A DNA stretch of 64,000 bases, from IMG/VR virus record IMGVR_UViG_3300020188_000808, positions 186,001-250,000 of that record; one strand, given 5' to 3'. Below, in pieces: positions 5,062 to 54,978 of the stretch (position 1 is its first letter; each line of letters opens with the position of its first letter). Position numbers and translations under genes: made by a program. Under the pieces are notes generated by a model. The model ran no database searches. It worked only from the letters and a program-made list of their open reading frames with translations, and had not been told where the DNA came from.

Positions 5062-5249
5062 TATGACACCACCTTAAGCAAAGGCTCAGTAGTCGTACTA
5101 TCATTATAGTCATCACCAAAGAACCTACGTACCGTTGTTTCTTTGCGTAGCATACCGTCTTTAACACGATACGTAATAAACTCTTGCTTAACAACTCCTG
5201 ACATATCGCCCAGGCTGTCAACTGCTGATTTTAATGGTCCGTCACTCAT
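5061..5249 (-). CDS. hypothetical protein
   Basis: 62-aa ORF translationally coupled on both sides. Confidence 0.6.
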   Translation of the reverse strand: MSDGPLKSAVDSLGDMSGVVKQEFITYRVKDGMLRKETTVRRFFGDDYNDSTTTEPLLKVVS

Positions 5250-5929
5250 TTTGAAAACTCCTGTTGTAATTTAATATTGTCCATAAATTCTTTTTTAGTA
5301 CCCGCATCTTCATTAAAAGCACCTTTAAGCACAGTTGTCTGTGTTAAACTGCTAGTTGCCATAATGCCTCTATTCTCACAACACCCATGTGTTGCCTGAA
5401 TATAAACACCTACGTTCTTTGAACCAGTTGCTTTCATAATCTCACGTGCGATATCATTACAAAGTTCTTCTTGTAGTGTACCACGTCTAGCACACCATTG
5501 TGCAATACGTGTGTATTTGCTTAAACCAATTAGTGTTTCAGCGGCAATAATACCAATGTATGCAATACCTGTTACTGGTTGATGATGATGTGAACACACA
5601 CTTTTAAGTTCTGAACGTACAACTAACATACCTTGATAACCATCATCTACATGATTAGGAAATGCAGTTGCATTAGGCATAGGATCATAACGTCCTGCCA
5701 TTAGTTCATTAATATACATTTTAGCAAGACGTCTACCAGTGTCCATACTGTTAGGATCATTTGCTCTATCAATTAATAAACTATCTAATACTGATTCAAA
5801 CTTAGGTGTAAGTTCTTCAATCAGTTCTTCTTTGTCGCCCTTCTGTAGGACTAAACTAATATTATCACCCGCCCAGTAACGTATGCCTTGTTCTTCTAGG
5901 CGAGCTTTAATTTGTTCACTTTTACTCAT
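5246..5929 (-). CDS. folE: GTP cyclohydrolase I
   Basis: SVCSHHHQP, GLSKYTR, LQEEL, HGCCENRG motifs. Confidence 0.95.
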   Translation of the reverse strand: MSKSEQIKARLEEQGIRYWAGDNISLVLQKGDKEELIEELTPKFESVLDSLLIDRANDPNSMDTGRRLAKMYINELMAGRYDPMPNATAFPNHVDDGYQGMLVVRSELKSVCSHHHQPVTGIAYIGIIAAETLIGLSKYTRIAQWCARRGTLQEELCNDIAREIMKATGSKNVGVYIQATHGCCENRGIMATSSLTQTTVLKGAFNEDAGTKKEFMDNIKLQQEFSK

Positions 5930-8699: not shown

Positions 8700-9327
8700 T
8701 TTTGTTTCTCCAAGGGTATGTTTCTTTCATTGCTAACCTTAATGGTCCTTGTGTGTGTATTTCAGGATCAAAGGGTACAAATTTGATAGTAGGTGTAAAT
8801 CTGTGAAAGTCTTTGAAAGGAGTAGCAGTATGTAATATATTACTTTTGAAAATAATCATACGTCCTGGAATAGGAGGGATAGCAATAATTTCAGGATATG
8901 ATTGACCTTCAATAGTACCTTCGTGTTTAAGGTTAGTAATAAACTTTGTTTCACCACCTTGATTAATATCCCAGCTATTGTTTGCATAGAACATAAATGT
9001 CCATGCATTATCACCTTCGTCATCAATGTGATAGTTTGCTAATTCACGTGGTGCAAAGATGTTTGCATGTGATCTTTTTAATACTGATCCATGTACATGC
9101 GGTACATGTTCTTCTAAGAATGTCCAAAGACTGTTAAATGTTTTAGTACCTAAGTAATCTCCGGTACTCATTCCTGTTGGAGGCAAATCAACATCGTCAA
9201 CTTCACCGTAGAAATAATTCCAACTAGCGACTTCTGTTACTAGTTCATTTAGTTCAGGTGGTCCAAATACTTCATCATATATTTTAATATCACCATCTAA
9301 GTATTCTGTAATTTTAGGCTTATGCAT
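8692..9327 (-). CDS. 2OG-Fe(II) oxygenase
   Basis: HxD (YHIDD), GGET, distal His (ILHTA) and Arg. Confidence 0.85.
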   Translation of the reverse strand: MHKPKITEYLDGDIKIYDEVFGPPELNELVTEVASWNYFYGEVDDVDLPPTGMSTGDYLGTKTFNSLWTFLEEHVPHVHGSVLKRSHANIFAPRELANYHIDDEGDNAWTFMFYANNSWDINQGGETKFITNLKHEGTIEGQSYPEIIAIPPIPGRMIIFKSNILHTATPFKDFHRFTPTIKFVPFDPEIHTQGPLRLAMKETYPWRNKND

Positions 9328-9766
9328 CTTTCAAATAATCCCTATTATCAATCCACTTGCCATCTTTGACAAAGCCCCAGCTTTGTGCTTTTTTACCCAT
9401 AAAGAACAAACTCCAACATGGAATGTTATTGTTGTTCTTGTCTTTAGCAAGTTCTAACCAATGCAAATCTTTTGCACTTCTAAATCTAATATGTCCTGGC
9501 CCACGCCAAAACTTACCTTCAGGTGTATGTTCCCAATAGCCACCACTTAAAATAATAGCACCCCAACTCCATGGATGATCATGTAGTGTAGGTTCATCGC
9601 TTACAAGAACTTTGTGTAGTGTAATATTAAACGGAAAGTTTTTACGTTCTTTTAAAAATAGATAATAACGGATAAGGTAAGGTACCTTTCCGTCTCTGTC
9701 TGTAATTACTCGACGTCTTCCAAGTTTGTCCATAATCTTAGAAAGGAATGTCATCATCAAATTCAC
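9320..9766 (-). CDS. cupin-fold protein
   Basis: LHDHPW...GGYWE...LHWLEL metal-binding cupin pattern; true start probably 9757 or 9733. Confidence 0.65.
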   Translation of the reverse strand: MNLMMTFLSKIMDKLGRRRVITDRDGKVPYLIRYYLFLKERKNFPFNITLHKVLVSDEPTLHDHPWSWGAIILSGGYWEHTPEGKFWRGPGHIRFRSAKDLHWLELAKDKNNNNIPCWSLFFMGKKAQSWGFVKDGKWIDNRDYLKDA

Positions 9767-10118
9767 CTGCTTCTTTTTTACCTTTGTAATCTTGCTTAAC
9801 TAAATCATACATAGTTTTAAAATTATGCCAAACTATTTTTAGTGCTGGATACTCTTTACACATTTCTGTTATTTCATCTTCGTCTAATGTATTTAGGCCA
9901 ACGTCAGAAAAAAGTGTACTATTAATATCAATACTAGTAATTCCGCCTACTGTTGCACCTGACTGAAATGAGTCATCAAATGAATATGTAACGTCACTCA
10001 TTGTGTTATCAAGGATAAGCCCACTATCTGATGCACTACCAATAGTAATTGTACTTGTACTGCACTGATCGTCAGTACCAATAGTAATTGAATAGTCATC
10101 TTTGTCTTTATCATCCAT
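9738..10118 (-). CDS. acidic protein ending in an SSB-like tail (EFDDDIPF)
   Basis: AAGGA SD before the ATG at 10118; C-terminus read directly. Confidence 0.7.
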   Translation of the reverse strand: MDDKDKDDYSITIGTDDQCSTSTITIGSASDSGLILDNTMSDVTYSFDDSFQSGATVGGITSIDINSTLFSDVGLNTLDEDEITEMCKEYPALKIVWHNFKTMYDLVKQDYKGKKEAGEFDDDIPF

Positions 10119-11157
10119 TACTAATTCCTTTATATAAAGCTCGACCATCAAAGAACTCTTTCTTTAATAGATCTGTTTGTTTTAATAGTGCAGGCAAATA
10201 AGATTCATAATTTTCTACATAGTCAACTAACTGTGCAACTATTTTATCTTTATTAGCTTTGTAGCTTTCAAAAGATTCAGTCCACGCACTAGGATATTTA
10301 AATTTATCAATAGCCATTTCACTATAGCTTAGTCTATCAGGCACCATAGGAAGTGCATTTACTAATGCACCTTCATACCAACTAATGCCAAGTGTTTCTT
10401 GTAGGTTAGCACTAAACACTACTTTTGCTTCACCTAGCAAGTTATGATATTCGTTTTTACTTAATGTTTGTTCTTGACATACTACAAATTCGTATTCAGG
10501 AAGTTGCTCCGCTAAGTCACGGAATATGTCTACTTGCTTCTCCGGTGCTACACGATGTGGGAACAAGACCAAGTCTCGCTTCTGCATACCTTTGTAACTG
10601 TCTAAACTGTTACGCAAATACTCCATAGGCCAACCAACTCTGTGATTCTTGTTTGGATCCATACGTAAACTTTTTGCAAATAGATCAATATGGAATTGTG
10701 TAGCAAAATAGTTATCATCATAACATTCATACATAGAACGTTCTGCATGTCTTACCCAAGGTTTGTCGCCTATTAGTCTACCCAAGAAGTCATGTGGATC
10801 ATAGCTACCAGCATGCCACATACCACCAATGCGAATGTCAACACCCAATAGTTCTGCCATGTAGCGTAGTTGTATAACTGTAGGGTTCCAGGCATCGGTA
10901 TAAAGAAAATAATCACCGTCCTTAATAGTTCCTGCACAGAACATTTCTCCTATTTGTTCTAGTTGTTTACTTTTGTAAACGTTAGTACCACCAAAGTTGA
11001 GAAAAGCCCCAGGCGTTGTAGCCTGAGGCGTTTCCCCTCCACTAATAATCTTTACGTCCATATTTGTAGCACGTTGAAGTTGCTTTGGAAGATATTCTTT
11101 CCATTGCTTAGTATAACGGGTATCTACTGCTTCAATGTCTACAATGTACGTTGTCAT
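10111..11157 (-). CDS. GT-B glycosyltransferase (GT4-like)
   Basis: MWHAG in the N-terminal domain; FPHRVAPEKQ and QETLGISWYEG (EX7E-like) in the C-terminal domain. Confidence 0.8.
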   Translation of the reverse strand: MTTYIVDIEAVDTRYTKQWKEYLPKQLQRATNMDVKIISGGETPQATTPGAFLNFGGTNVYKSKQLEQIGEMFCAGTIKDGDYFLYTDAWNPTVIQLRYMAELLGVDIRIGGMWHAGSYDPHDFLGRLIGDKPWVRHAERSMYECYDDNYFATQFHIDLFAKSLRMDPNKNHRVGWPMEYLRNSLDSYKGMQKRDLVLFPHRVAPEKQVDIFRDLAEQLPEYEFVVCQEQTLSKNEYHNLLGEAKVVFSANLQETLGISWYEGALVNALPMVPDRLSYSEMAIDKFKYPSAWTESFESYKANKDKIVAQLVDYVENYESYLPALLKQTDLLKKEFFDGRALYKGISNG

Positions 11158-11375
11158 TAGTTAGGTTTCCTATTCCGGGTAAACTTACCCTTATTCTTAT
11201 TATCACGATTCTTCCTCAATTTGGAAGGATCTAAATAGAATTGCCATGCTCGGCTATTCTTGTTGTACAAATCTTTTTCATCGAACTTAAAACCGTAGTT
11301 ACGACAAAAAACACGGAACTTATCCAAGTCATCAAAAATTTTGATAATCTCAGGCTTTTCTTCCCAGTACGACAT
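11157..11375 (-). CDS. small basic hypothetical protein
   Basis: 72 aa, GGAG SD, TAATG-coupled to the glycosyltransferase. Confidence 0.65.
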   Translation of the reverse strand: MSYWEEKPEIIKIFDDLDKFRVFCRNYGFKFDEKDLYNKNSRAWQFYLDPSKLRKNRDNKNKGKFTRNRKPN

Positions 11376-17154: not shown

Positions 17155-19824
17155 CTATTCTCCGAAATCAAACAAACTATTAAATGTATTGTTCTGTAAT
17201 GTGCTTGAAATATCATAGTCTAGCACACCGATCAAATTACCTAGTTTGTTGTCAATAATTGTTGATTCCATTGCATCATCATCAAACGGAAGTTCTTTAA
17301 ACCAATCTGGAATACGTAGTTCGTCTGTTGGATATGCAACACTTGTGTAGCCTAGTGGGTTCTGTTTTAGTTTACAAACAATAACTTTCATACCGTCTAC
17401 AATCTCTTGCGAGTATTTGTCACCGTTCATACGCTTTAGTGTGTTCCAGTTAATACTTGCACGAACATGTCCGGGCATAGTTGCTTTGCCTTGCTTTGCT
17501 TCTTTACGTTGATACTCGCCAATTTTGTTTGCACGTTTAGGTGAACCTTTTTCAAAACCAGGACGTAGTTTAAATGCAGTACGGAAGTCTGTAATCTTTG
17601 CAAGTATTTCAGCTTCTGTCTTATCTGTAAGTACCATAAGCAATAGTTCACTTAAAAACTCTTGCATAAACACAGGTGTATCTGATCGTTTAAGATCAAG
17701 ACCCATTGCTTTTACTTTACCTAGTTTACCGTTGACGTCCATGCGTTCGCCTTCGTTATCATAAATTAAAGCCGCATAACGTTTCTTAGTAATAAACAAA
17801 CCTGACTCAGCAACAATTTCTCTACCTGCCGCAATAACATCTGATCTGCTCTTTGGACAATGAAATGCTTCTTGCATAAACTTTGGAAATGTTTCATTCG
17901 CCGCTTCACATACTTGATCATATAATGTAATAACACTATCTTTTGTCCAAGGAATTTTTCCAGCATCAATATCTGCTTTTAGTACAGGGTGGGCACTAAA
18001 GTAAACAGAATCAGTATCACCATAGATAATACTATCACCTACATGATCATATGTGCCTGTAATAACTTTATTAACTTCTGCACTCATATGTTTTGCGATA
18101 GCTCTACCTGTTAGTGTTGTTGATTGACCAATCCGCGGATCAAAGAATCTACAACCAGGATTAAGAATTGCACCATACAAACTGTTCAAGTTAATCTTCT
18201 TAACCAACTGTCGTTTATCCCAAAACTCAACTTCAATTCTGTTTCCAGCATCAATAGCTTTGCCTTTTTGTTTTTGTAAATCTTTACGTTCACTATACCA
18301 ACGTTTAAGAAGTCCTGGAATAACACCGTCAAATTCATTAGTTAAGATAGTTCCGTTAGCAGTTAGCATCCATGGCTTGTGTGAATCAAATATTAGTTTG
18401 TATATCTCAGCACCACTAAGAATTTCACTTTCACCGTTTTCAAAGTCAACAGTAATACTAATGTCTTTCTTCTTCTCCATAACTGCTTCGTATTCAATAG
18501 TACCAAAGCGGCCTTCCCAAGCACCTGCAAATGACTTCTTCTGAAGTGTCATTGCATCTTCAACCATTGCATCAGTTAGCTCAGGACGTAATTGTCCTAT
18601 AACTGTTGCAGGATCCATATTTAATGCTCTAATAACAGACGGATATAGTGAATTCAAATCCATTGAACCAATCCACTTGTGTACACCTTTTTTAGGAAAT
18701 GCTACATAAGCACCTGCCGCAGGATCACTGCCAGGCTCACGTTTTACTCTGTTAGGAACTTGCAAGCCTCTGTGATGTGCTTCGTTGATAATTGCTTGTT
18801 CTGTAACTGCAACTGCACCCATAGTGGTCTGTAGTAACACCGTGTTACTATGTGCAAGTTCGTTACTAAGATCAATAAACTTTAGTTTTTTGTCCAGCTT
18901 GTCCAGTAGTGCAACGTCTTGTCTGTTGTACTCAATGAACGTTCTGAAGTCATTGTTATAAAGTTGATCGAGCGTACCTTCGTACACAGTTTTGTTTTCG
19001 CCGATCTCAAGTTCGCCAATAGCGTCGAGTCGATATGTGTGTCTTTCTTCATATGTGTATTTACGATATAATTCCAAACTATCTAAATGCACTCTGCCTA
19101 TTAGGTCATAGGTTTCAGCTTTACGTCCGTACTTTTCATATTCACGTTTCTTAGGAAGTTGTTTCCATAAACAAAAACGTCTTGTATCATCTTTACTTAA
19201 AACTCTTTTTACACGATTTACAGTATATGGAATATCATAACCTTCACTGTTCCAACCTGTAAGTATATCACTGTCTTGTATAATATCAAGAAACGCTTCT
19301 AACATGTCGCCTTCTTTTTCATACAAGTATGTGTTTGGAAAATCTTTTACTTCTTCTTTTGCTTGTTCCATTGATAAGCCTTTAGGAGGCATAGCAAATG
19401 TAACTAGACTATCTAACCATTGTAAGTGTACAGTAATAGCAGTAATAGGCATAAACGGATCACTAGGATCAGCAAAGCCACGTTCTGGATCAAAGTCTGT
19501 CTCAATATCAAAAAAGCAAACATTCAACTTAGGTGAATCTACATTTAAATAGTTTTCACTCAAACATTGGAAGATTGGATTAATATCACTTTCAAACAAT
19601 TCTTTGTTTGCGTTAATGGCTAGTTCTTTACGAAACTGTTTTGTGTTTTTAGCAACAATTCTGCTTAACGGATCGCCGTAAATACTTTTGTACTTACCAC
19701 GTTGATCTTTATAATAAAATGTGTATTTGATTGGGTATTCTGTGTAAGAACGCTTACCATCTTTTCGTTCGACTACTCTGATCACATCCTGATCACGATC
19801 AAACTGTGCGTCTACATAACTCAT
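17155..19824 (-). CDS. polB: family B DNA polymerase with proofreading domain (gp43-like)
   Basis: DIETD, NSEGYD, YNRQD exonuclease motifs; DLNSLYPS, KINLNSLYG, YGDTDS polymerase motifs. Confidence 0.97.
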   Translation of the reverse strand: MSYVDAQFDRDQDVIRVVERKDGKRSYTEYPIKYTFYYKDQRGKYKSIYGDPLSRIVAKNTKQFRKELAINANKELFESDINPIFQCLSENYLNVDSPKLNVCFFDIETDFDPERGFADPSDPFMPITAITVHLQWLDSLVTFAMPPKGLSMEQAKEEVKDFPNTYLYEKEGDMLEAFLDIIQDSDILTGWNSEGYDIPYTVNRVKRVLSKDDTRRFCLWKQLPKKREYEKYGRKAETYDLIGRVHLDSLELYRKYTYEERHTYRLDAIGELEIGENKTVYEGTLDQLYNNDFRTFIEYNRQDVALLDKLDKKLKFIDLSNELAHSNTVLLQTTMGAVAVTEQAIINEAHHRGLQVPNRVKREPGSDPAAGAYVAFPKKGVHKWIGSMDLNSLYPSVIRALNMDPATVIGQLRPELTDAMVEDAMTLQKKSFAGAWEGRFGTIEYEAVMEKKKDISITVDFENGESEILSGAEIYKLIFDSHKPWMLTANGTILTNEFDGVIPGLLKRWYSERKDLQKQKGKAIDAGNRIEVEFWDKRQLVKKINLNSLYGAILNPGCRFFDPRIGQSTTLTGRAIAKHMSAEVNKVITGTYDHVGDSIIYGDTDSVYFSAHPVLKADIDAGKIPWTKDSVITLYDQVCEAANETFPKFMQEAFHCPKSRSDVIAAGREIVAESGLFITKKRYAALIYDNEGERMDVNGKLGKVKAMGLDLKRSDTPVFMQEFLSELLLMVLTDKTEAEILAKITDFRTAFKLRPGFEKGSPKRANKIGEYQRKEAKQGKATMPGHVRASINWNTLKRMNGDKYSQEIVDGMKVIVCKLKQNPLGYTSVAYPTDELRIPDWFKELPFDDDAMESTIIDNKLGNLIGVLDYDISSTLQNNTFNSLFDFGE

Positions 19825-27504: not shown

Positions 27505-28161
27505 TTATTTATCTAGATCTTTACTACTTATAATTTTATCAATTCTCATCAAATCCTTCTTTAAGAACAATCTAATTAAGGTTATAGTGGCAAAATCTTT
27601 AACATACATGTACATACCTTTGAGATTATATCCGCGTTGTATGTTACTTAATACTCTATTACCTATCTTAATTTTACTTTTATGTTTGATGCAGAAGTTC
27701 GCAAGGTTCGGATCAGCAGTTCCGTTAAGTGTAATTTTATAACCAAAGTCTATAGTATCATTAATAATAATATTAGGGGTTAAGATTGCATTATCTTTGG
27801 GCATGTGTACTACGCAAACTGCGTTTAGTTTACTAGTTATAGTTTTAACCCATTCATAGTTATTAGTGTATATTCCTAAGTGATAACTTTCACAACGAAT
27901 TTTAAAATTTTCTTTTTGTTTTATGAATAACGAAAGTAATATCTGTAGATCGGATAGTTCTTCAGAAGTAACATTTACTGTTCTAAATCCAGACCCCCAT
28001 TTAACAAAACCTTCAGCTTCGTATTGTTGAATAGCAGTATCGATAGACTTTCTTGCATGAGAAAAGTTTTTATTTCTAAAAACAAAGCCTAATGCATTAT
28101 GAAAGTCTACCTTATACTTGTATTGATCGTAGAATAGTTTATGAGAATCAACTTTTATCAA
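27505..28161 (-). CDS. hypothetical protein
   Basis: 218-aa ORF overlapping the clpA stop region. Confidence 0.7.
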   Translation of the reverse strand: MIKVDSHKLFYDQYKYKVDFHNALGFVFRNKNFSHARKSIDTAIQQYEAEGFVKWGSGFRTVNVTSEELSDLQILLSLFIKQKENFKIRCESYHLGIYTNNYEWVKTITSKLNAVCVVHMPKDNAILTPNIIINDTIDFGYKITLNGTADPNLANFCIKHKSKIKIGNRVLSNIQRGYNLKGMYMYVKDFATITLIRLFLKKDLMRIDKIISSKDLDK

Positions 28162-30415
28162 CTGTTTCGGGCTCCTTGACTGTATTTACAGTAGTCTGTA
28201 AGTCAAACGCTCCGTCTTTAATGTCGATATGTAGTTTACCACCGTTCTTTAGGTCACCAAACAGTAATACTTTAGACAACGGAGTTTTAATATCATTATC
28301 AATTACACGTTGCAACGGTCTTGCACCCATCTTGGGATCAAATCCTTTGTCTACTAAGTAATCAATTGCTTCGTCTGAAATAGTAGTTACAACATTCTTT
28401 TCAGTAAGCATTGTCTTAAGATCAACTAAGAACTTACCAACAATTTTAATCATTGTATTCTTTTCTAATCTACCAAATGTCATAACACCGTCAAGTCTGT
28501 TACGGAATTCTGGAGCAAAGAACTTTTTAAGTTCGCCATCGTCGTGGTCTTTCTCCATATCGCCAAATCCTACTGCATTAGTATCAGCTTCAGCTGAACC
28601 TAAGTTTGTTGTAAGGATTAATACAAGGTTTCTACAGTCAGCAGTCTTACCGTTACTACCTGTAACAAATCCGTTGTCCATAATTTGTAATAATAATGAA
28701 CTTACATCTGGGTGTGACTTCTCAATTTCATCAAGTAGTAATACACAGTTTGGATTCTCTTGTACTTTAGTAATTAGTAAGCCACTATTTTCTTCAAAGC
28801 CTACATATCCTGGAGGCGAACCAATTAGTTTAGCAACACTATGTTTCTCTTGATACTCTGACATATCAAATCTAATTAGTTTTACACCTAATTGTTTTGC
28901 AAGTTGTTTCGCTGTTTCAGTTTTACCTACACCAGTTGGCCCCATAAACACAAACGATCCAATTGGTTTGTTTTCTGCTTTAAGTCCTGCTTGTGCTACA
29001 TGAATCTTATCAACAATGCTGTCAATTGAACTGTCTTGTCCGTAAATTGCGGCTTTCATATTATGGTTTAAATTAGCAAGGTTACTAGTTTCAGTTTCCA
29101 TAATTTGTTCTTTAGGCATGTTAATCATCTTAGCAAGTTCAAACTGTACTTCTTTCATACCAACTGTCTTGTTTGGTTCACTTGTAATATTAAATCTTGA
29201 ACATGCTACATCTAATAAGTCAATAGCTTTGTCAGGTAATTTTTTATCTGTTTGATATTTCACACTAAGTTTAATTGCAGTATCAATAGCTTCTTCTGTA
29301 ATAGATACTTTGTGAAAGTCTTCGTAATATTTTTTAATACCTAATAAAATATCTTTAGTAATTTCATTAGTAGGCTCGTCAACACTTACACGAGCAAATC
29401 TACGCATCAATGCACGATCTTTTTCAAAGAACTTTCTATATTCTTCCCATGTAGTTGATGCTACAACTTTAATATTTCCTTTAGTAAGAATAGGCTTTAG
29501 CATATTAGCTAAGTCATTTGATTGACCACTACCGCCAGCACCTGCTCCACTAATCATATGGGCTTCGTCAATAAACATAATAGTTTTGCCTTTCTTCTTA
29601 AGGCCAGCAATAACTAATTTAAATCTTTCTTCAAAGTCTCCTCGGTATTTACTACCTGCTAACATACTACCAATGTCTAAGTTGTATACTGCATATTCTT
29701 TAAGAAACTCTGGAACATTGTTATTAACAATATTATATGCAAGTCCTTCTGCAATAGCAGTTTTACCTACACCAGGCTCACCAACTAGCAATACATTGTT
29801 CTTCTGTCTACGGCCAAGTGCTAGTGCAATGCTTTCGAGTTCTTCTGAACGTCCAATAACAGGATCAATTTTTCCTGTTTCAGCATCAGTATTAAGATTA
29901 GTTGTAAACGAACGTAATGCACGATTGGCCATCCCGGCCATTTCCTCATCTTCAAAGTTAGCTTCAAGTTCATTGTTTAGATAGTCGGCAAACTTTTCTT
30001 TTTCAATGCCTACTTCGTTAATAAAGTACAATGCCCAACTTTTCTTTTCGTTAAACATACTTAGGAATACATCGCTAACTTCAATAGAGTTGCGACCACT
30101 AAACAACACTTGTGTAAATGCTCTGTTTAGTACACGTTCTACAGCCTGTGTTTTCTTAGGCTTCCATTTTTTAGGAAGTTCCGCTCCTTCAGGCATTAGT
30201 AAGTCGTTACATTTAGTTTTAAGATAGTTCTCTACATTCTTTTTTATAAAATCAGGGTCAGTATCATTATACCCAGATAGAATATTAGAAAAGTCTTCTT
30301 CACATAACATTGCAAACAACAAATGCTCTAATGTAAGATACTCGTGATTTAACTTTTTAGTTACATCAAGTGCTTTGTCAAATATTTTCTGTAAATTTTC
30401 GCTAGGTTCAACCAT
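28148..30415 (-). CDS. clpA: ATP-dependent Clp protease ATP-binding subunit ClpA
   Basis: Clp N-domain; two AAA+ modules (GEPGVGKT/FIDEAH and GPTGVGKT/LLDEIEK); no ClpB M-domain; VGF loop. Confidence 0.92.
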   Translation of the reverse strand: MVEPSENLQKIFDKALDVTKKLNHEYLTLEHLLFAMLCEEDFSNILSGYNDTDPDFIKKNVENYLKTKCNDLLMPEGAELPKKWKPKKTQAVERVLNRAFTQVLFSGRNSIEVSDVFLSMFNEKKSWALYFINEVGIEKEKFADYLNNELEANFEDEEMAGMANRALRSFTTNLNTDAETGKIDPVIGRSEELESIALALGRRQKNNVLLVGEPGVGKTAIAEGLAYNIVNNNVPEFLKEYAVYNLDIGSMLAGSKYRGDFEERFKLVIAGLKKKGKTIMFIDEAHMISGAGAGGSGQSNDLANMLKPILTKGNIKVVASTTWEEYRKFFEKDRALMRRFARVSVDEPTNEITKDILLGIKKYYEDFHKVSITEEAIDTAIKLSVKYQTDKKLPDKAIDLLDVACSRFNITSEPNKTVGMKEVQFELAKMINMPKEQIMETETSNLANLNHNMKAAIYGQDSSIDSIVDKIHVAQAGLKAENKPIGSFVFMGPTGVGKTETAKQLAKQLGVKLIRFDMSEYQEKHSVAKLIGSPPGYVGFEENSGLLITKVQENPNCVLLLDEIEKSHPDVSSLLLQIMDNGFVTGSNGKTADCRNLVLILTTNLGSAEADTNAVGFGDMEKDHDDGELKKFFAPEFRNRLDGVMTFGRLEKNTMIKIVGKFLVDLKTMLTEKNVVTTISDEAIDYLVDKGFDPKMGARPLQRVIDNDIKTPLSKVLLFGDLKNGGKLHIDIKDGAFDLQTTVNTVKEPETVDKS

Positions 30416-34925: not shown

Positions 34926-35314
34926 TACTTTTTAGTTTTGCTTTTGTCTGTAGACTCGTAATATTCTTTGTAAGATTTAATAATTTCGTCTTGTTGAAGC
35001 ATATATGCACGTATTTGTGCGAAGTTTTTACTTAGAGCTTCATAACCGTCATCTGTTAATCCAAATAATACAGGGTCAACACCGCCTGCTTTAAGTTTAG
35101 CAAATACTTCATCGGCATTGTCACTAGTAATGATAGTCCATTTGATTTCTTCTAGTTTTGGAGTTAACGGTTGTGGCAACGCAAGAGGTTCTCTTGGAAC
35201 TTCTGTCTTAAAGACTTCTAGTTGCTTAACAGAACTACATCCACTAATAAGGAACGTAATTGGGATTAGCAATACTAGGACACTCAGAGTTGATCTCAGA
35301 TTTCTTAGTAGCAT
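34925..35314 (-). CDS. outer-membrane spanin-like lipoprotein (o-spanin)
   Basis: Signal peptide with ISGC lipobox, Pro-rich segment, overlaps the 3' end of the i-spanin. Confidence 0.7.
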   Translation of the reverse strand: MLLRNLRSTLSVLVLLIPITFLISGCSSVKQLEVFKTEVPREPLALPQPLTPKLEEIKWTIITSDNADEVFAKLKAGGVDPVLFGLTDDGYEALSKNFAQIRAYMLQQDEIIKSYKEYYESTDKSKTKK

Positions 35315-35729
35315 TTTTCTCTTTCTCCGTTAATGGTGACCCCATAGCAATTTCTACACATCTCATTGCTTTTGTAGTCGCACCGTTAATAACACGTTCA
35401 ACTGATTTAGGACGTTCATCTGCAAGTTTGCCAATGTCACGTACTTCACCTTGAGCGTTAATTTTATTAAAGCGTTCGTCTAGTGCTTGGAATTCAGCGG
35501 CTAGTGTTTTATTTTGTTCAGTTAGTTTGGCTGATATAGCTTTTTGCGATTCAAAGTCAGCTTTTGCTTGTGCAATTACTTCTTTTTGATCAGCAACACT
35601 TTGTTCTAACTTTAAATTATTTGCTTCTGATGTAGCCAAGTCTGCTTTTATATTCTTAACATATACATAGCCACCGCCGGCACCTGCCAACGCTACAACT
35701 ATCATTGCTATTTTAATCGATGCAAACAT
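35244..35729 (-). CDS. inner-membrane spanin-like protein (i-spanin)
   Basis: N-terminal TM, long coiled coil, two C-terminal Cys; follows the endolysin. Confidence 0.7.
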   Translation of the reverse strand: MFASIKIAMIVVALAGAGGGYVYVKNIKADLATSEANNLKLEQSVADQKEVIAQAKADFESQKAISAKLTEQNKTLAAEFQALDERFNKINAQGEVRDIGKLADERPKSVERVINGATTKAMRCVEIAMGSPLTEKEKNATKKSEINSECPSIANPNYVPY

Positions 35730-35849
35730 CTTTTACCTCATATCTATGTTGTTCACAGACGACAATTTCAATTGGCTTGTTGTCGCCGTCTGTAAACGTT
35801 TCAATTAGTTTACCTTCGTGTTGTCTACCGCAATTTTGGCAAACGTCAC

Positions 35850-36359
35850 TCATGCCATTGACAAAGCAAGTTCCGTTGTTTCGTCTACTCTACGTGTCCA
35901 ACCTCGACCAAATGTTTCAAAGGTCTTTAATCTTTCGTAGTATCCTTGACGGTCTTCTTGGAACTCTTTAATAGTTTCTTTAAGTCCATGTGTGTCAACA
36001 TATTCAGCTAATTTCTTTAGCGTGTTAGGACCAATTCCGCCATCAGCTACTGTACCAATCATAGTTTGTAAGTATTTTGCTGAACGTCCTGTACCGGCAT
36101 TAACACCAAAGTCAAATACACATAAGTCTAATCCACTTGGTAGTTCATCGCCTTTAACACGATCCCAATAATTCTTTTTGTAAATTGGAGCAACATCTGC
36201 GACTGTTAAGTCTTTCATGTCTTTTGTTCCGCCCCATTCTTCATACACACGTTTTGTAACACCCAAGTTAGTTTCGCCACCTGGATCTTTAGGGTGATTT
36301 ACATATCCGCCCTCGTGGTGTAGAATAGTTTCTAAACATTTTTGATAGTTTTCTTGCAT
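35850..36359 (-). CDS. endolysin, glycoside hydrolase family 108 with C-terminal peptidoglycan-binding region
   Basis: HEGGYVNHPKDPGGETNLGVT, DFGVNAG, FGRGWTRR. Confidence 0.92.
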   Translation of the reverse strand: MQENYQKCLETILHHEGGYVNHPKDPGGETNLGVTKRVYEEWGGTKDMKDLTVADVAPIYKKNYWDRVKGDELPSGLDLCVFDFGVNAGTGRSAKYLQTMIGTVADGGIGPNTLKKLAEYVDTHGLKETIKEFQEDRQGYYERLKTFETFGRGWTRRVDETTELALSMA

Positions 36360-50878: not shown

Positions 50879-52501
50879 TTATCCTTGTCCACTACCACTA
50901 GTACCTTTGGCACTAAACTGTATTGGACTATTATAAGGCCAATATGCTATATTACGTGTACCACCATATAATCTAGGTATACTATTACTTGCAACAAAAC
51001 TGTCAGGATTACCTGTATTATATAATTGTTCTTTTGCGTTGTTAGTCAAGAAATCTTTAAATTCTTGTGCTGTGCCTCCCGGATTTGCTTGTAACCATAA
51101 AGCACCCATTCCTGTTATTTGCGGCGCCGCCATGCTTGTTCCACTAATTCTAGCAATAGAATATGCTGTGTTAGGTGGATAATTTTGTTTGGTACTATAT
51201 GTAGATACATTACTTGTAACACTTGTAATTTGTTCACCAGCGGCATTGATGTCTAATCGAGCACCACGCTCACTATCTTCTCTTAAAAATTCTTCTGAAC
51301 CATACTGGTCACATGCCATATTGCCAACCCATACTGTATCTAATGAGTGCGGGCTACTTGGCCTATTATAAAATACAGGCTGTCCTGCGGCAATGTATCC
51401 AGCCCATGTTTCGTTGAGTGTATAATAACTGTCATATATTGTATCAGCATATTGTCCTGCGGATGATCCTGCACAAGGATGATATCCATTACCTGCGGCT
51501 TTAACACATATTACTCCGGCATCAGTTAATTGTTCTTGTTCAACATCAGCTGGCGTATATGCCATTGGGTGTCTACTTGCTACTGCACCGTATTGTGTAA
51601 ATGTACCACTAGTCCACGCCTGTGGTGTAATACTTTGATCAACACCTCTATAAAAAATTGATTGAATTTGTGTAGATCCAAATTGTGAATTTCTATAATA
51701 CCAACTATATCCCCAACTTTGATTTACAATAGTAGGACGTTTAAATCCTGTATTTGGATCAATTGGTTTTTGTTCGTGGAATAATCTAATTAAATCATAA
51801 CGATCAGTATCAATACTATGATTAGACCCGCCAAATATTCTCATAGAATAAATTCTTGCATTCTTTGCCCAACCATATGTTTTACCAGCGGCAATACCTG
51901 TACAATGACTACCATGAGCACCTGCTCTATTTGAATCATTTGATGTGTTAGCATAAAAGCTACTAGGCATTGTTCCTGATAATCCAGTTAGTTCGTACCA
52001 ATCAACTTGTTGGAATCTACTTACTCCATTTGCATCTTCCCATTCAGGGTGATCAACTTGTACACCGTCATCTTGAATAACAATGTCTACTCCGGTTCCG
52101 TCTAGTGTATAATTGTAATCAGCTGTACGTGTGCTTGAAGAATTATAATCTAAATTTGGATCAATATGTCTTTCTAAACCCCAGTTAACACTATTTGAAC
52201 CGTTTACAAAACTTCTTTGAAATTCTGCATTTTGTGTAGCATATAGTTCTTGTGTTTCTATGTCTGGAACTCCTGCTACTGATAGTACTCGCGGGTCATT
52301 TGATAATGCCGCGGCTTCTTCGTCAGTAAGATCATAATGCGTCATTCTGTTATTAGCAGGCCTAGCATTAATTACTGGTACACTTCTATCAGGTACAATA
52401 CTACTGTTTACAGAGTCATCAGTCGATGTGTCTCTTTGTAAATCGTTATCGACTACTGCAACATCTATGCCTTTTTCTGTAACTACAATATATTCAGCCA
52501 T
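50879..52501 (-). CDS. subtilisin-like (S8) serine protease
   Basis: IQDDG (Asp), HGSH (His), AAGN, SGTSMAAP (Ser); N-terminal propeptide-like region. Confidence 0.9.
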   Translation of the reverse strand: MAEYIVVTEKGIDVAVVDNDLQRDTSTDDSVNSSIVPDRSVPVINARPANNRMTHYDLTDEEAAALSNDPRVLSVAGVPDIETQELYATQNAEFQRSFVNGSNSVNWGLERHIDPNLDYNSSSTRTADYNYTLDGTGVDIVIQDDGVQVDHPEWEDANGVSRFQQVDWYELTGLSGTMPSSFYANTSNDSNRAGAHGSHCTGIAAGKTYGWAKNARIYSMRIFGGSNHSIDTDRYDLIRLFHEQKPIDPNTGFKRPTIVNQSWGYSWYYRNSQFGSTQIQSIFYRGVDQSITPQAWTSGTFTQYGAVASRHPMAYTPADVEQEQLTDAGVICVKAAGNGYHPCAGSSAGQYADTIYDSYYTLNETWAGYIAAGQPVFYNRPSSPHSLDTVWVGNMACDQYGSEEFLREDSERGARLDINAAGEQITSVTSNVSTYSTKQNYPPNTAYSIARISGTSMAAPQITGMGALWLQANPGGTAQEFKDFLTNNAKEQLYNTGNPDSFVASNSIPRLYGGTRNIAYWPYNSPIQFSAKGTSGSGQG

Positions 52502-52527: not shown

Positions 52528-54978
52528 TTAATCAACAACATATCCTGATTCTCCTGCTAGTCTTGGATCGTCTTGTGCTGGTGTGTTACCATCTTGGAAT
52601 ATACTTCTAATTGTTGCAAGTGATGGTTTACTAATTATTGGTGCAATGTATGTGTTATGGAATGCATAACCTAACGGATTGTTTGTTTGAATGCCTGCTT
52701 GGGTACGCATATCATCTGTCCACTCTGGAGCAAGACTTCCACCGTCCCATAATTCTGTGTATTCAAACATAGCAAAGTTTAGTAGGAACAAGTATTCTTT
52801 TGCGGCTACTTCAAATGCATCTGCATCTGTTTTCCAATCATCTGGATTTTCTTGATAACCTGATGGATCCCACTTGCCAGCATCGTATGCTTCTTCCATT
52901 GCGGCATACAAATCACCTGTCTGCCAGTCAGCGGCTAAGAACTGATATAGTTTTATATCGTCTGCAGGTAACCCGTGCATGTGTAGTGTGTGGAATACGT
53001 GTTCAATAACTTCTTGTGCGTCAATGTCACCATCGCCATACCCATCACCAGTTGAGTTTAAATACCATACCATGTCATTTTGTACAGTCGTATCAAACAG
53101 GTTAGTTAAGTTCCAAGCAAGAACACCTGCATCAGTTAAGAAGTTTGGAGTGTAATCTGCTCCTGCACCTCTTGCTACTCTTTGTATAGTTGGTAAGCCT
53201 GCGTGATAAGTTCCTGCATCACCACGGAGTGTTTTAATTAAATTTCTTTGGTATTCTTCGTTAATGCCTGCACCATTTGGATCTGTAAATAATTCAAACA
53301 TACGTGCTACTTTTTCTAACCATGCATCTGGTACTGCTGTTTGTCCACCTACTGTGCCAGCACCCATAACTCTTACACCGTTAACAGTAACTTCACGTTT
53401 GAAGAAGTCACTGCCGTCACCTGTAACATTAATAATTGGAAAATTACGATATTCTGAGTCTGCTATATCTTTAAAGGTTACAGCAAAATGCGCCGCAAAT
53501 GGAAACACCCCTATTCTATTAGATGTTGCATCTGGACTCATTAAATTTCTACTGTTTGCAAAAAATGTACTTGCATTACCTTCATCAGTAGAACCTTGAA
53601 ATAATGCACCTTTGAGTGCATTGTCCTGCCACCATTTACGCAACTGTGCCGGAGACCAACCTGGGTTAAGTTGTAATAATAAACAACTCATACCCGATAC
53701 TTGTGGTGTTGACATACTTGTTCCTGAATAGGTTGCAACTGCTGATGAACTTGTATTTGTAGCACTAACAATATCAGTTCCTGCTGTATAAACATCTACT
53801 CGAGGTCCTTTATCACTTGATGATTGGCAAGCCTCTGATCCTGAATACAACGCACTATCTATATTACCTACCACAATAGTGTCAGGACCAATATTACCTG
53901 CTCCTCTATTATAATAAATTGGATTACCAGAAGCAATACCTCCTGTTGTAATACTACGTAAGATATAATTATCGTAATCTACGTCACCTGGGTAACAAAG
54001 TTTTTGACCTTGGTTACCTGCACTTTTCATATAGTGTACACCTTCGTCCTGCATTTCTTCAACTTCAGCATTTAGGTTGTACAAGTTAGCATTAAATCTA
54101 TTTAAAGTATCTCCAATCATTCCGTATGCTGTACTTTTAACAGTACCAACATTTTGACCTCTAAAATTTATAGCAGTCATACTTGTAAAGTATGCTTTAT
54201 ATCCCCAACTAGCACCAACCACAGTTGGACGCTTAACACCTGTTACAGGGTCAACAGTTTTTGCTCTATGAAATTCTTTAATACTATCAAACCATAATGA
54301 ACTAGGAATAATATCCATAGGCATACAAAAAATATTTGCATTTTTAGCCCAGCCATAATCTTTACCTACAGCAATGCCGCAACAATGTGTTGCATGATAA
54401 CTTGATCCAGATGTATTTGAATAATCAATAGTAGAAATACTACCCATGTTTGGAAGTGTATTCCATTGAAATTCTTGTAAGCGACTATTGCCGTCTTTGT
54501 CTTGCCATTGTACGTGATCAAATCTAAATTTACTTTCTTGGTGTACGTAGTCAATACCTGTTCCATCTAGATGGTATGGATAAACACCACCAATATCAAT
54601 ATTTTGAGAACCTGAACCCCAAGCATTAGCTTCTTGTATGTGTCTACGTAGTCCCCAATTTCCTCTAAGAGTACTACTATTGTCTCTAGTCCAATTTGCT
54701 TCTTGTTCGTAGTCGACCCAGCTTTCGTCCCATTCTAACGGTTCGTTAACTCCGCCAACATCTGGATGGTTTAATAATGCTTGTGCTTCTTCGTCTGTAA
54801 GAGCAACATGAAACATTCGTTTACTAACAGGTCGTTCATTTACAATACTAATAGTTCTATCTGGAACAATGTTACTATCAATACCATCATCCATAGATGT
54901 GTCTCTGTTAAGATCTGATAATATTAAATTTTTATCAGCACCTTTGTGTAGCGAAACAACATATTCTTTTTCTGACAT
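52528..54978 (-). CDS. subtilisin-like (S8) protease with a C-terminal His-rich domain
   Basis: HQES (Glu at the Asp position), HATH, SAGN, SGTSMSTP; C-terminal EHVFHTLHMH. Confidence 0.85.
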   Translation of the reverse strand: MSEKEYVVSLHKGADKNLILSDLNRDTSMDDGIDSNIVPDRTISIVNERPVSKRMFHVALTDEEAQALLNHPDVGGVNEPLEWDESWVDYEQEANWTRDNSSTLRGNWGLRRHIQEANAWGSGSQNIDIGGVYPYHLDGTGIDYVHQESKFRFDHVQWQDKDGNSRLQEFQWNTLPNMGSISTIDYSNTSGSSYHATHCCGIAVGKDYGWAKNANIFCMPMDIIPSSLWFDSIKEFHRAKTVDPVTGVKRPTVVGASWGYKAYFTSMTAINFRGQNVGTVKSTAYGMIGDTLNRFNANLYNLNAEVEEMQDEGVHYMKSAGNQGQKLCYPGDVDYDNYILRSITTGGIASGNPIYYNRGAGNIGPDTIVVGNIDSALYSGSEACQSSSDKGPRVDVYTAGTDIVSATNTSSSAVATYSGTSMSTPQVSGMSCLLLQLNPGWSPAQLRKWWQDNALKGALFQGSTDEGNASTFFANSRNLMSPDATSNRIGVFPFAAHFAVTFKDIADSEYRNFPIINVTGDGSDFFKREVTVNGVRVMGAGTVGGQTAVPDAWLEKVARMFELFTDPNGAGINEEYQRNLIKTLRGDAGTYHAGLPTIQRVARGAGADYTPNFLTDAGVLAWNLTNLFDTTVQNDMVWYLNSTGDGYGDGDIDAQEVIEHVFHTLHMHGLPADDIKLYQFLAADWQTGDLYAAMEEAYDAGKWDPSGYQENPDDWKTDADAFEVAAKEYLFLLNFAMFEYTELWDGGSLAPEWTDDMRTQAGIQTNNPLGYAFHNTYIAPIISKPSLATIRSIFQDGNTPAQDDPRLAGESGYVVD

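Follow-up and report, generated by a model that had tools for sequence, protein, structure and literature searches.

A small acidic jumbo phage protein without a detected DNA-binding fold ends in the docking peptide of bacterial SSB

Why would a small acidic phage protein, in which no DNA-binding fold is detected, end in the same peptide that bacterial SSB uses to recruit repair and replication enzymes? [quoted passage not shown] The question was raised by a sequence-only reading, which described a protein of about 126 residues ending in GEFDDDIPF, with a low-complexity S/T/D N-terminal half, one short helical segment and no obvious OB fold. It was interpreted there as an SSB-tail mimic that recruits or titrates host genome-maintenance enzymes, for example diverting repair from modified phage DNA, or that acts as a decoy for defences sensing SSB. 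We examined these claims in the whole stretch of DNA concerned, here called the window, which comprises 64,000 nucleotides (bases 186001-250000) of a linear IMG/VR viral contig of 267,783 bp, with 36% G+C and an estimated completeness of 75%.

The contig belongs to an uncultured T4-related jumbo myovirus, encoding a family-B polymerase (PolB), baseplate and tail-fibre genes, UvsX and an SbcD-like nuclease. Based on the polymerase, the nearest isolates are Sinorhizobium phage Phosso (50% identity), Agrobacterium phage Atu_ph07 (46%) and Rak2-like coliphages (about 43%). The same sequence is abundant in salt-marsh metagenomes. It was also found in salt-marsh libraries labelled as RNA, but as these are stored as contigs this shows presence and does not prove transcription. 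No psbA was found in five genome fragments, making a cyanobacterial host unlikely, and no tRNA genes were found in the window.

The observation itself was confirmed. The open reading frame, here called X, encodes 126 amino acids and ends in AGEFDDDIPF, and its position and those of its parts and neighbours are given in Table 1. One small correction is needed, as positions 9741..9764 encode the eight residues EFDDDIPF, whereas the preceding Gly is encoded by 9765-9767. An alternative TTG start at 10151 is unlikely, because the N-termini of homologs align on the ATG and M1 is invariant in their alignment (A1). The last nine residues of E. coli SSB are MDFDDDIPF (PMC7913777), hence seven of the last eight residues of X are identical to it. 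The ending is more than chance. Among 535 six-frame ORFs of at least 50 aa in the contig, X is the only one that ends in [DE][DE]x[ILVMF]PF, and among 3,276 such ORFs in 86 related loci all 58 with that ending are orthologs of X.

Table 1. Positions of X, its parts and its neighbours in the window.
Feature	Position	Strand	Description
CDS of X	9738..10118	-	ATG at 10118; last codon 9743-9741; stop TAA 9740-9738
Shine-Dalgarno sequence	10126..10130	-	AAGGA, 7 nt upstream of the ATG; the ATG overlaps the TGA stop of the upstream gene (ATGA)
Residues 1-77	9888..10118	-	Hypervariable, acidic, Ser/Thr-rich region with short T-I-T-I type stretches, predicted disordered
Residues 78-116	9771..9887	-	Conserved, predicted two-helix hairpin core, consensus MCKEYPALxKVWxNFKxVYDLVKQDYKGKK; M86, Y90, P91, L93, F100, Y104 and D110 invariant
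Residues 117-126	9741..9770	-	AGEFDDDIPF, short linker plus SSB-tip-like motif at the extreme C-terminus
Upstream gene	10111..11157	-	348-aa GT-B (GT4-like) glycosyltransferase, predicted from fold, overlapping the start codon of X
Downstream gene	9320..9733	-	137 aa, phrog_4786 (E=8e-36), labelled cysteine dioxygenase; 4 nt after the stop of X (gap 9734-9737); variable neighbour

How is X built? An AlphaFold2 model run with 43 sequences gave a disordered N-terminal half (pLDDT below 50), two helices rather than one at residues 80-89 and 91-116 (pLDDT about 84), and a disordered tail. The composition of the N-terminal half is as the sequence-only reading described, with a net charge of -12 and 14 Asp, 13 Ser and 11 Thr in residues 1-77. 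This half is hypervariable in length and sequence, but its composition is constant across the family, with medians of 17% Asp/Glu, 1.6% Lys/Arg and 29% Ser/Thr and a whole-protein pI of 4.05, and it contains short alternating stretches such as T-I-T-L-D. Such a region, almost free of Lys/Arg, is incompatible with ssDNA binding. The hairpin is strongly conserved, with a mean column identity of 73% in alignment A2. Several polar positions are conserved as well, which points to a specific binding surface.

No OB fold was found by any of the approaches used. Pfam and NCBIfam searches with X returned nothing, and no SSB or OB family was found among 43 members of the family scanned against Pfam at E up to 10. 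The AlphaFold2 model contains no beta-barrel, and a fold search against 48,161 PDB chains gave a best Z of 3.9 with generic helical hits only. A PHROGs search gave only a weak hit of the low-complexity half to phrog_30369, of unknown function.

X belongs to a viral, metagenome-only family. A word-based search found 82 homologs, and a profile of the last 49 residues found 492 cluster representatives at 50% identity with E of 0.001 or better, widespread in marine and estuarine metagenomes. The 150 best representatives are all 42-165 aa, with the conserved domain at the C-terminal end and no fusion to any other domain. A tblastn search of 50,697 phage isolates gave no match, and a pattern scan of one genome each of 185,579 bacterial and archaeal species found no relative. 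The nearest ESM Atlas clusters are unnamed and 94-100% viral.

Is the tail maintained? Whether homologs conserve the terminal motif had been set beforehand as a check, and the answer is that it is selected but facultative. Of 81 close homologs, 55 end in [ILVF]PF, nine end in DDDLLI and 13 have no tail. Of the 150 best representatives, 63 end in the canonical motif, an acidic stretch followed by [ILVMF]PF, another eight end in a different xPF (APF, NPF, PPF, FPF), 23 end in another acidic-plus-hydrophobic sequence, 42 stop within nine residues of the helix and 14 have other endings. This sample is biased towards tail-bearing members, because the query profile included the tail. Where present, the motif is always at the very end, with no internal or extended copies apart from one probably frameshifted representative, and it sits on different linkers such as AGEL-, ERGL-, GNHED- and KQD-. 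The position matters, as SSB-tip pockets recognise the terminal carboxylate. Across 35 distinct DNA versions of the tail, Pro (CCT, CCA, CCG) and Phe (TTC, TTT) are invariant despite the synonymous codon changes. Furthermore, pN/pS is 0.29 for the tail and 0.24 for the core, against 0.69 for the N-terminal half, with synonymous sites near saturation.

On a tree of the adjacent, well-conserved glycosyltransferase, the canonical tail needs at least 5-6 changes of state among 51 loci, and these look like repeated losses or decay. Tail-less members keep the same core consensus and the same gene position. About 28% of the 150 best representatives have no tail and another 25-30% have degenerate ones, and the tail is therefore dispensable for the core function of the family.

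Could the tail simply copy a recruitment peptide of the phage itself? The idea that the phage has no SSB of its own was considered, as four Pfam searches for PF00436 and PF08804 found nothing in six large fragments. It was rejected because phrog_1192 finds a divergent, 321-aa gp32-like gene next to UvsX (G000:C1:35150-36115, E = 5e-65) and also finds it in two related contigs. X is a different ORF and matches none of PF08804, phrog_224 and phrog_1192. The gp32-like protein ends in a Pro/Ala-rich linker and EDILAMIRSRQS, which is unrelated to DDDIPF, and PolB ends in NSLFDFGE, an RB69-type clamp-binding motif. The tail of X therefore copies neither of these peptides but the bacterial one, and X as a clamp binder was rejected.

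The gene context is well conserved. X directly follows the 348-aa gene in 82 of 82 loci where the upstream flank is present, and also in the two distant members on long contigs, whereas one distant tail-less member follows a sugar epimerase. The conserved block consists of genes for a 515-aa, a 182-aa and a 152-aa protein, a 72-aa basic protein, the glycosyltransferase and X, followed by a variable gene, a phosphoribosyltransferase, a HIT protein and GTP cyclohydrolase I. The phrog_4786 gene follows X in 59 of 83 loci, and in the others a 2OG oxygenase or the phosphoribosyltransferase follows. The 348-aa protein models well by AlphaFold2 (pLDDT 82) as a GT-B fold, and Foldseek matches the model to BshA, GlgM, MshA and a tetrahydrobiopterin glucosyltransferase at E 1e-9 to 1e-7, that is, to GT4 enzymes with small-molecule acceptors.

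The proposed link to modified phage DNA is not supported. The neighbouring glycosyltransferase resembles GT4 enzymes with small-molecule or protein acceptors, no T4 DNA glucosyltransferase appears among the 50 fold matches listed for it, and no DpdA/TGT was found in five large genome fragments. A ThyA-family gene occurs in two related fragments, but it matches thymidylate synthase very strongly.

Taken together, the interpretation given with the original observation is only partly supported. The missing OB fold, the selection on the tail and its match to the bacterial consensus agree with an SSB-tip mimic, whereas a pure titration role fits poorly with the tail-less orthologs. The explanation we favour is that X is an early or middle gene product built from three modules: the fast-evolving disordered acidic half, the hairpin, which would dock onto a conserved partner, and, in about half of the family, a host-type SSB tip ([DE][DE]x[I/L]PF-COOH) on a linker of 4-10 residues. 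The tip would most likely insert its Pro-Phe and free carboxylate into the pockets that SSB-interacting proteins such as ExoI, RecQ, RecO, RecJ, PriA, the chi subunit, RNase HI and Ung use to bind SSB. X would thereby either tether those enzymes to whatever the hairpin binds or compete with SSB for them, and the two cannot be separated by computation. Our analysis establishes the architecture, the lack of a detectable OB fold, the selection on the tail, its strict C-terminal position and its difference from the phage's own SSB and clamp motifs. That the tail binds SSB-tip pockets, that those pockets belong to host proteins and that the hairpin has a separate partner is inferred, the host side by analogy with E. 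coli SSB, and we consider functional mimicry of the tip about as likely as not.

This inference is supported by published work showing that the tip alone is competent. A free 15-mer binds RecO with K = 1.2e7 per M, and tip peptides change the behaviour of RecO, RecQ and RadD allosterically (PMC7913777). A 10-mer activates mycobacterial ClpX only if the terminal Phe is present (PMC7847540). A 126-aa protein displaying the identical tip on a flexible end should therefore occupy the same pockets, although the linker between helix and tip is far shorter than the 56-residue linker of SSB. Minor tail variants in the family (LPF, PPF) resemble natural SSB variants such as mycobacterial DDEPPF. The equal conservation of the core in tail-less members argues that the hairpin has its own partner, and a modular protein is the most economical model.

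Of the alternatives, a pure decoy is the one that survives best, but we consider it unlikely. X would then exist only to titrate SSB-interacting enzymes away from SSB, either shutting down host replication restart and repair or shielding phage ssDNA from ExoI, RecJ and RecQ, and the acidic N-terminal half might add an ssDNA-like surface. The tail evidence, the strongly acidic and nearly Lys/Arg-free N-terminal half and the sub-micromolar affinity of free tip peptides (PMC7913777) are consistent with this. However, a decoy without its bait should not persist, yet 42 of the 150 best representatives lack the tail and keep the core in the same gene position, and at least five lineages lost or degraded the tail. 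Nor is there any sign that X presents several tails at once, as bacterial SSB does as a homotetramer or dimer of double-OB chains.

Somewhat less likely, the tail may be an internal phage motif that docks onto a phage-encoded replication, recombination or repair protein, such as the 5'-3' exonuclease, UvsX, the primase-helicase or an HhH-GPD glycosylase. Its likeness to the bacterial tip would then reflect shared pocket chemistry or descent from host-derived phage enzymes. X lies in the replication and nucleotide-metabolism region, near PolB, a 5'-3' exonuclease and an HhH-GPD gene, and the very high conservation of the core suggests a conserved partner, possibly a phage protein. Phage SSBs such as T4 gp32 and T7 gp2.5 use acidic C-tails for their own replisomes. 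On the other hand, the replisome of this phage is not visibly tuned to DDDIPF, given the unrelated C-terminus of its gp32-like SSB, the clamp motif is also different, and the tail matches the bacterial consensus to the residue.

A more speculative and doubtful possibility is that X is the founding member of a class of phage hub-mimic proteins, in which the host docking peptide has been moved onto a non-DNA-binding scaffold. The extended acidic, Ser/Thr-rich half, possibly glycosylated by the coupled glycosyltransferase, would imitate ssDNA. Together with the tip it would present a two-part imitation of SSB-coated ssDNA that traps or redirects host nucleases and helicases such as ExoI, RecJ, RecQ and PriA, and tip variants (IPF, LPF, PPF) would track the SSB tips of different host phyla.

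It is also improbable, though not excluded, that X is functionally tied to the glycosyltransferase, either as an acceptor for O-glycosylation through its Ser/Thr-rich half or as a targeting subunit of the enzyme, in which case the tail would only localise the product. The constant adjacency with overlapping stop and start codons, the Ser/Thr content and a fold match, at rank 50, to a glycosyltransferase that modifies serine-rich repeat proteins (3rhz) are consistent with this, as is the distant member that follows a sugar epimerase. Adjacency alone is weak evidence, however, the best fold matches have small-molecule acceptors, and Phosso, a relative, has the enzyme but an unrelated gene in the position of X. 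A complex prediction for the glycosyltransferase with X scored 0.00 without a verdict, which is no evidence either way. Finally, a degenerate AraC-type helix-turn-helix that brings SSB-tip-binding enzymes to a DNA site is very unlikely, as it rests on a lone hit of the C-terminal 49-residue profile to the second HTH region of E. coli XylR (4fe4, residues 352-384, E = 0.003), although many AraC-family structures are in the PDB, and is not corroborated by Pfam (no HTH_AraC, PF00165, or HTH_18, PF12833, hit in 43 members at E up to 10), by the fold search, by the single long second helix of the model in place of the AraC three-helix unit or by the pI of about 4.

If the tail works as inferred, phages can address the whole SSB interactome with a 10-residue peptide on a small scaffold, a bacterial-virus counterpart of the short-linear-motif mimicry well known in eukaryotic viruses. 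Host-motif mimicry and viral SSBs that copy the tip have been described before, whereas we found no report, in the full-text literature searched, of a phage protein carrying the tip without an ssDNA-binding fold. The large family offers natural on/off variants of the tail for comparison, and as the tip is identical to that of E. coli SSB the idea is directly testable with existing E. coli reagents.

How does X compare with known systems? Ocr, Arn and Ugi, the acidic DNA mimics of phages, are also small and very acidic, and X shares the Lys/Arg-poor surface, but these mimics are rigidly folded, whereas the acidic half of X is hypervariable and predicted disordered, and none of them is known to carry an SSB tip. 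T4 gp33 has a similar overall design, a small acidic protein of about 110-130 aa with a helical docking core and a terminal peptide, in gp33 a C-terminal clamp-binding tail, that tethers it to a replication hub. There is no sequence relationship (hhalign probability 0.5%), X as a gp33 analogue was rejected, and the tail of X differs from this phage's clamp motif SLFDF. The tails of T4 gp32 and T7 gp2.5 are likewise acidic recruitment handles, with a terminal aromatic residue in gp2.5, but they sit on the phage's own SSB and address phage replisome proteins. Bacterial SSB (PF00436) shares with X the acidic run followed by I/L-P-F with a free carboxylate. X differs from it in lacking a detectable OB fold, an ssDNA-binding composition and the long disordered Gly/Gln/Pro-rich linker, its disordered part being N-terminal and rich in Asp, Ser and Thr. 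Closest among viral proteins are phage- and prophage-encoded SSBs with a host-like tip, namely DUF669 prophage proteins (PMC13687109) and the OB-fold protein 0087 ending in DDIPF (bioRxiv 10.64898/2026.10.27.754916), which presumably plug into host genome maintenance. These are real ssDNA-binding proteins with a DUF669 or OB fold, whereas in X no such domain is found, and this phage has a separate gp32-like SSB without the tip.

The phage encodes its own gp32-like SSB, next to UvsX. This protein is missed by the Pfam models PF08804 and PF00436, whereas a match to phrog_1192 was found at E = 5e-65. It ends in a Pro/Ala-rich linker followed by EDILAMIRSRQS. Annotation based on Pfam alone would wrongly describe this phage group as lacking an SSB. 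The locations of this gene and of the other features considered here are listed in the table.

Locations of the features discussed in the text. Positions are those of the window unless another reference is named (G000:C1, contig of the phage; L102, locus of a distant member of the X family).
Feature	Reference	Position	Strand	Length (aa)
gp32-like SSB	G000:C1, outside the window	35150-36115	-	321
GT4-like glycosyltransferase	window	10111-11157	-	
FolE-like gene, assigned by synteny	window	about 5246-5929	-	
Protein with strongly basic C-terminal tail	window	11157-11375	-	72
Core of X, residues 78-116	window	9771-9887	-	
Region of X compared in RNA-labelled and DNA libraries	window	9600-10420		
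Family-B DNA polymerase	window	17155-19824	-	
ATP-dependent protease or AAA+ protein	window	28148-30415	-	755
First phrog_9158 paralogue	window	50879-52501	-	540
Second phrog_9158 paralogue	window	52528-54978	-	816
Distant tail-less family member, protein P0181	L102	990-1487		165

The GT4-like glycosyltransferase is very abundant in aquatic metagenomes, with at least 8,000 clusters at 90% identity, and is 70–88% identical across this phage group. It is part of a conserved block together with GTP cyclohydrolase I and a 152-aa protein (phrog_17812), although the FolE-like gene is assigned only by synteny with Pfam-annotated genes in three loci, L003, L006 and L100. One of the fold matches of the glycosyltransferase is a tetrahydrobiopterin glucosyltransferase, and the block might therefore make a glycosylated pterin or another small molecule. 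No DpdA was found in the genome fragments searched. In locus L102 the distant, tail-less member of the X family follows an NAD-dependent sugar epimerase rather than the glycosyltransferase; the neighbour is again a sugar-metabolism gene.

Just upstream of the glycosyltransferase is the gene for the small protein with a strongly basic C-terminal tail, and its start codon overlaps the stop codon of the glycosyltransferase (ATGA). It was found in 65 of 83 X loci, whereas no corresponding gene is annotated at that position in Sinorhizobium phage Phosso. A role as a charge-complementary partner of the acidic X is possible. A profile of the core of X aligned with the second helix-turn-helix region of E. 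coli XylR (4fe4, residues 352–384) at E = 0.003, but no other AraC-family structure and no Pfam AraC model was hit.

In two RNA-labelled salt-marsh libraries the contig covering X has a lower word depth (20 and 13) than its neighbours (29–107), whereas the depth in DNA libraries is nearly flat (110–190). This is consistent with real, uneven transcription, although contig depths are a poor measure of it.

Inspection of the window further revealed two adjacent paralogous genes located next to baseplate and tail-fibre genes, both of which match phrog_9158 (E = 1e-67 for the 540-aa and 7e-58 for the 816-aa protein). The phage also encodes an ATP-dependent protease or AAA+ protein (phrog_4871, E = 2e-242). 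Mycobacterial ClpX is activated by the SSB tip (PMC7847540), but this is only loosely associated with the SSB-like tail of X. The family-B DNA polymerase ends in NSLFDFGE, a clamp-binding tail resembling that of RB69, and its nearest isolates are Sinorhizobium phage Phosso (50%), Agrobacterium phage Atu_ph07 (46%) and the Rak2-like coliphages (about 43%).
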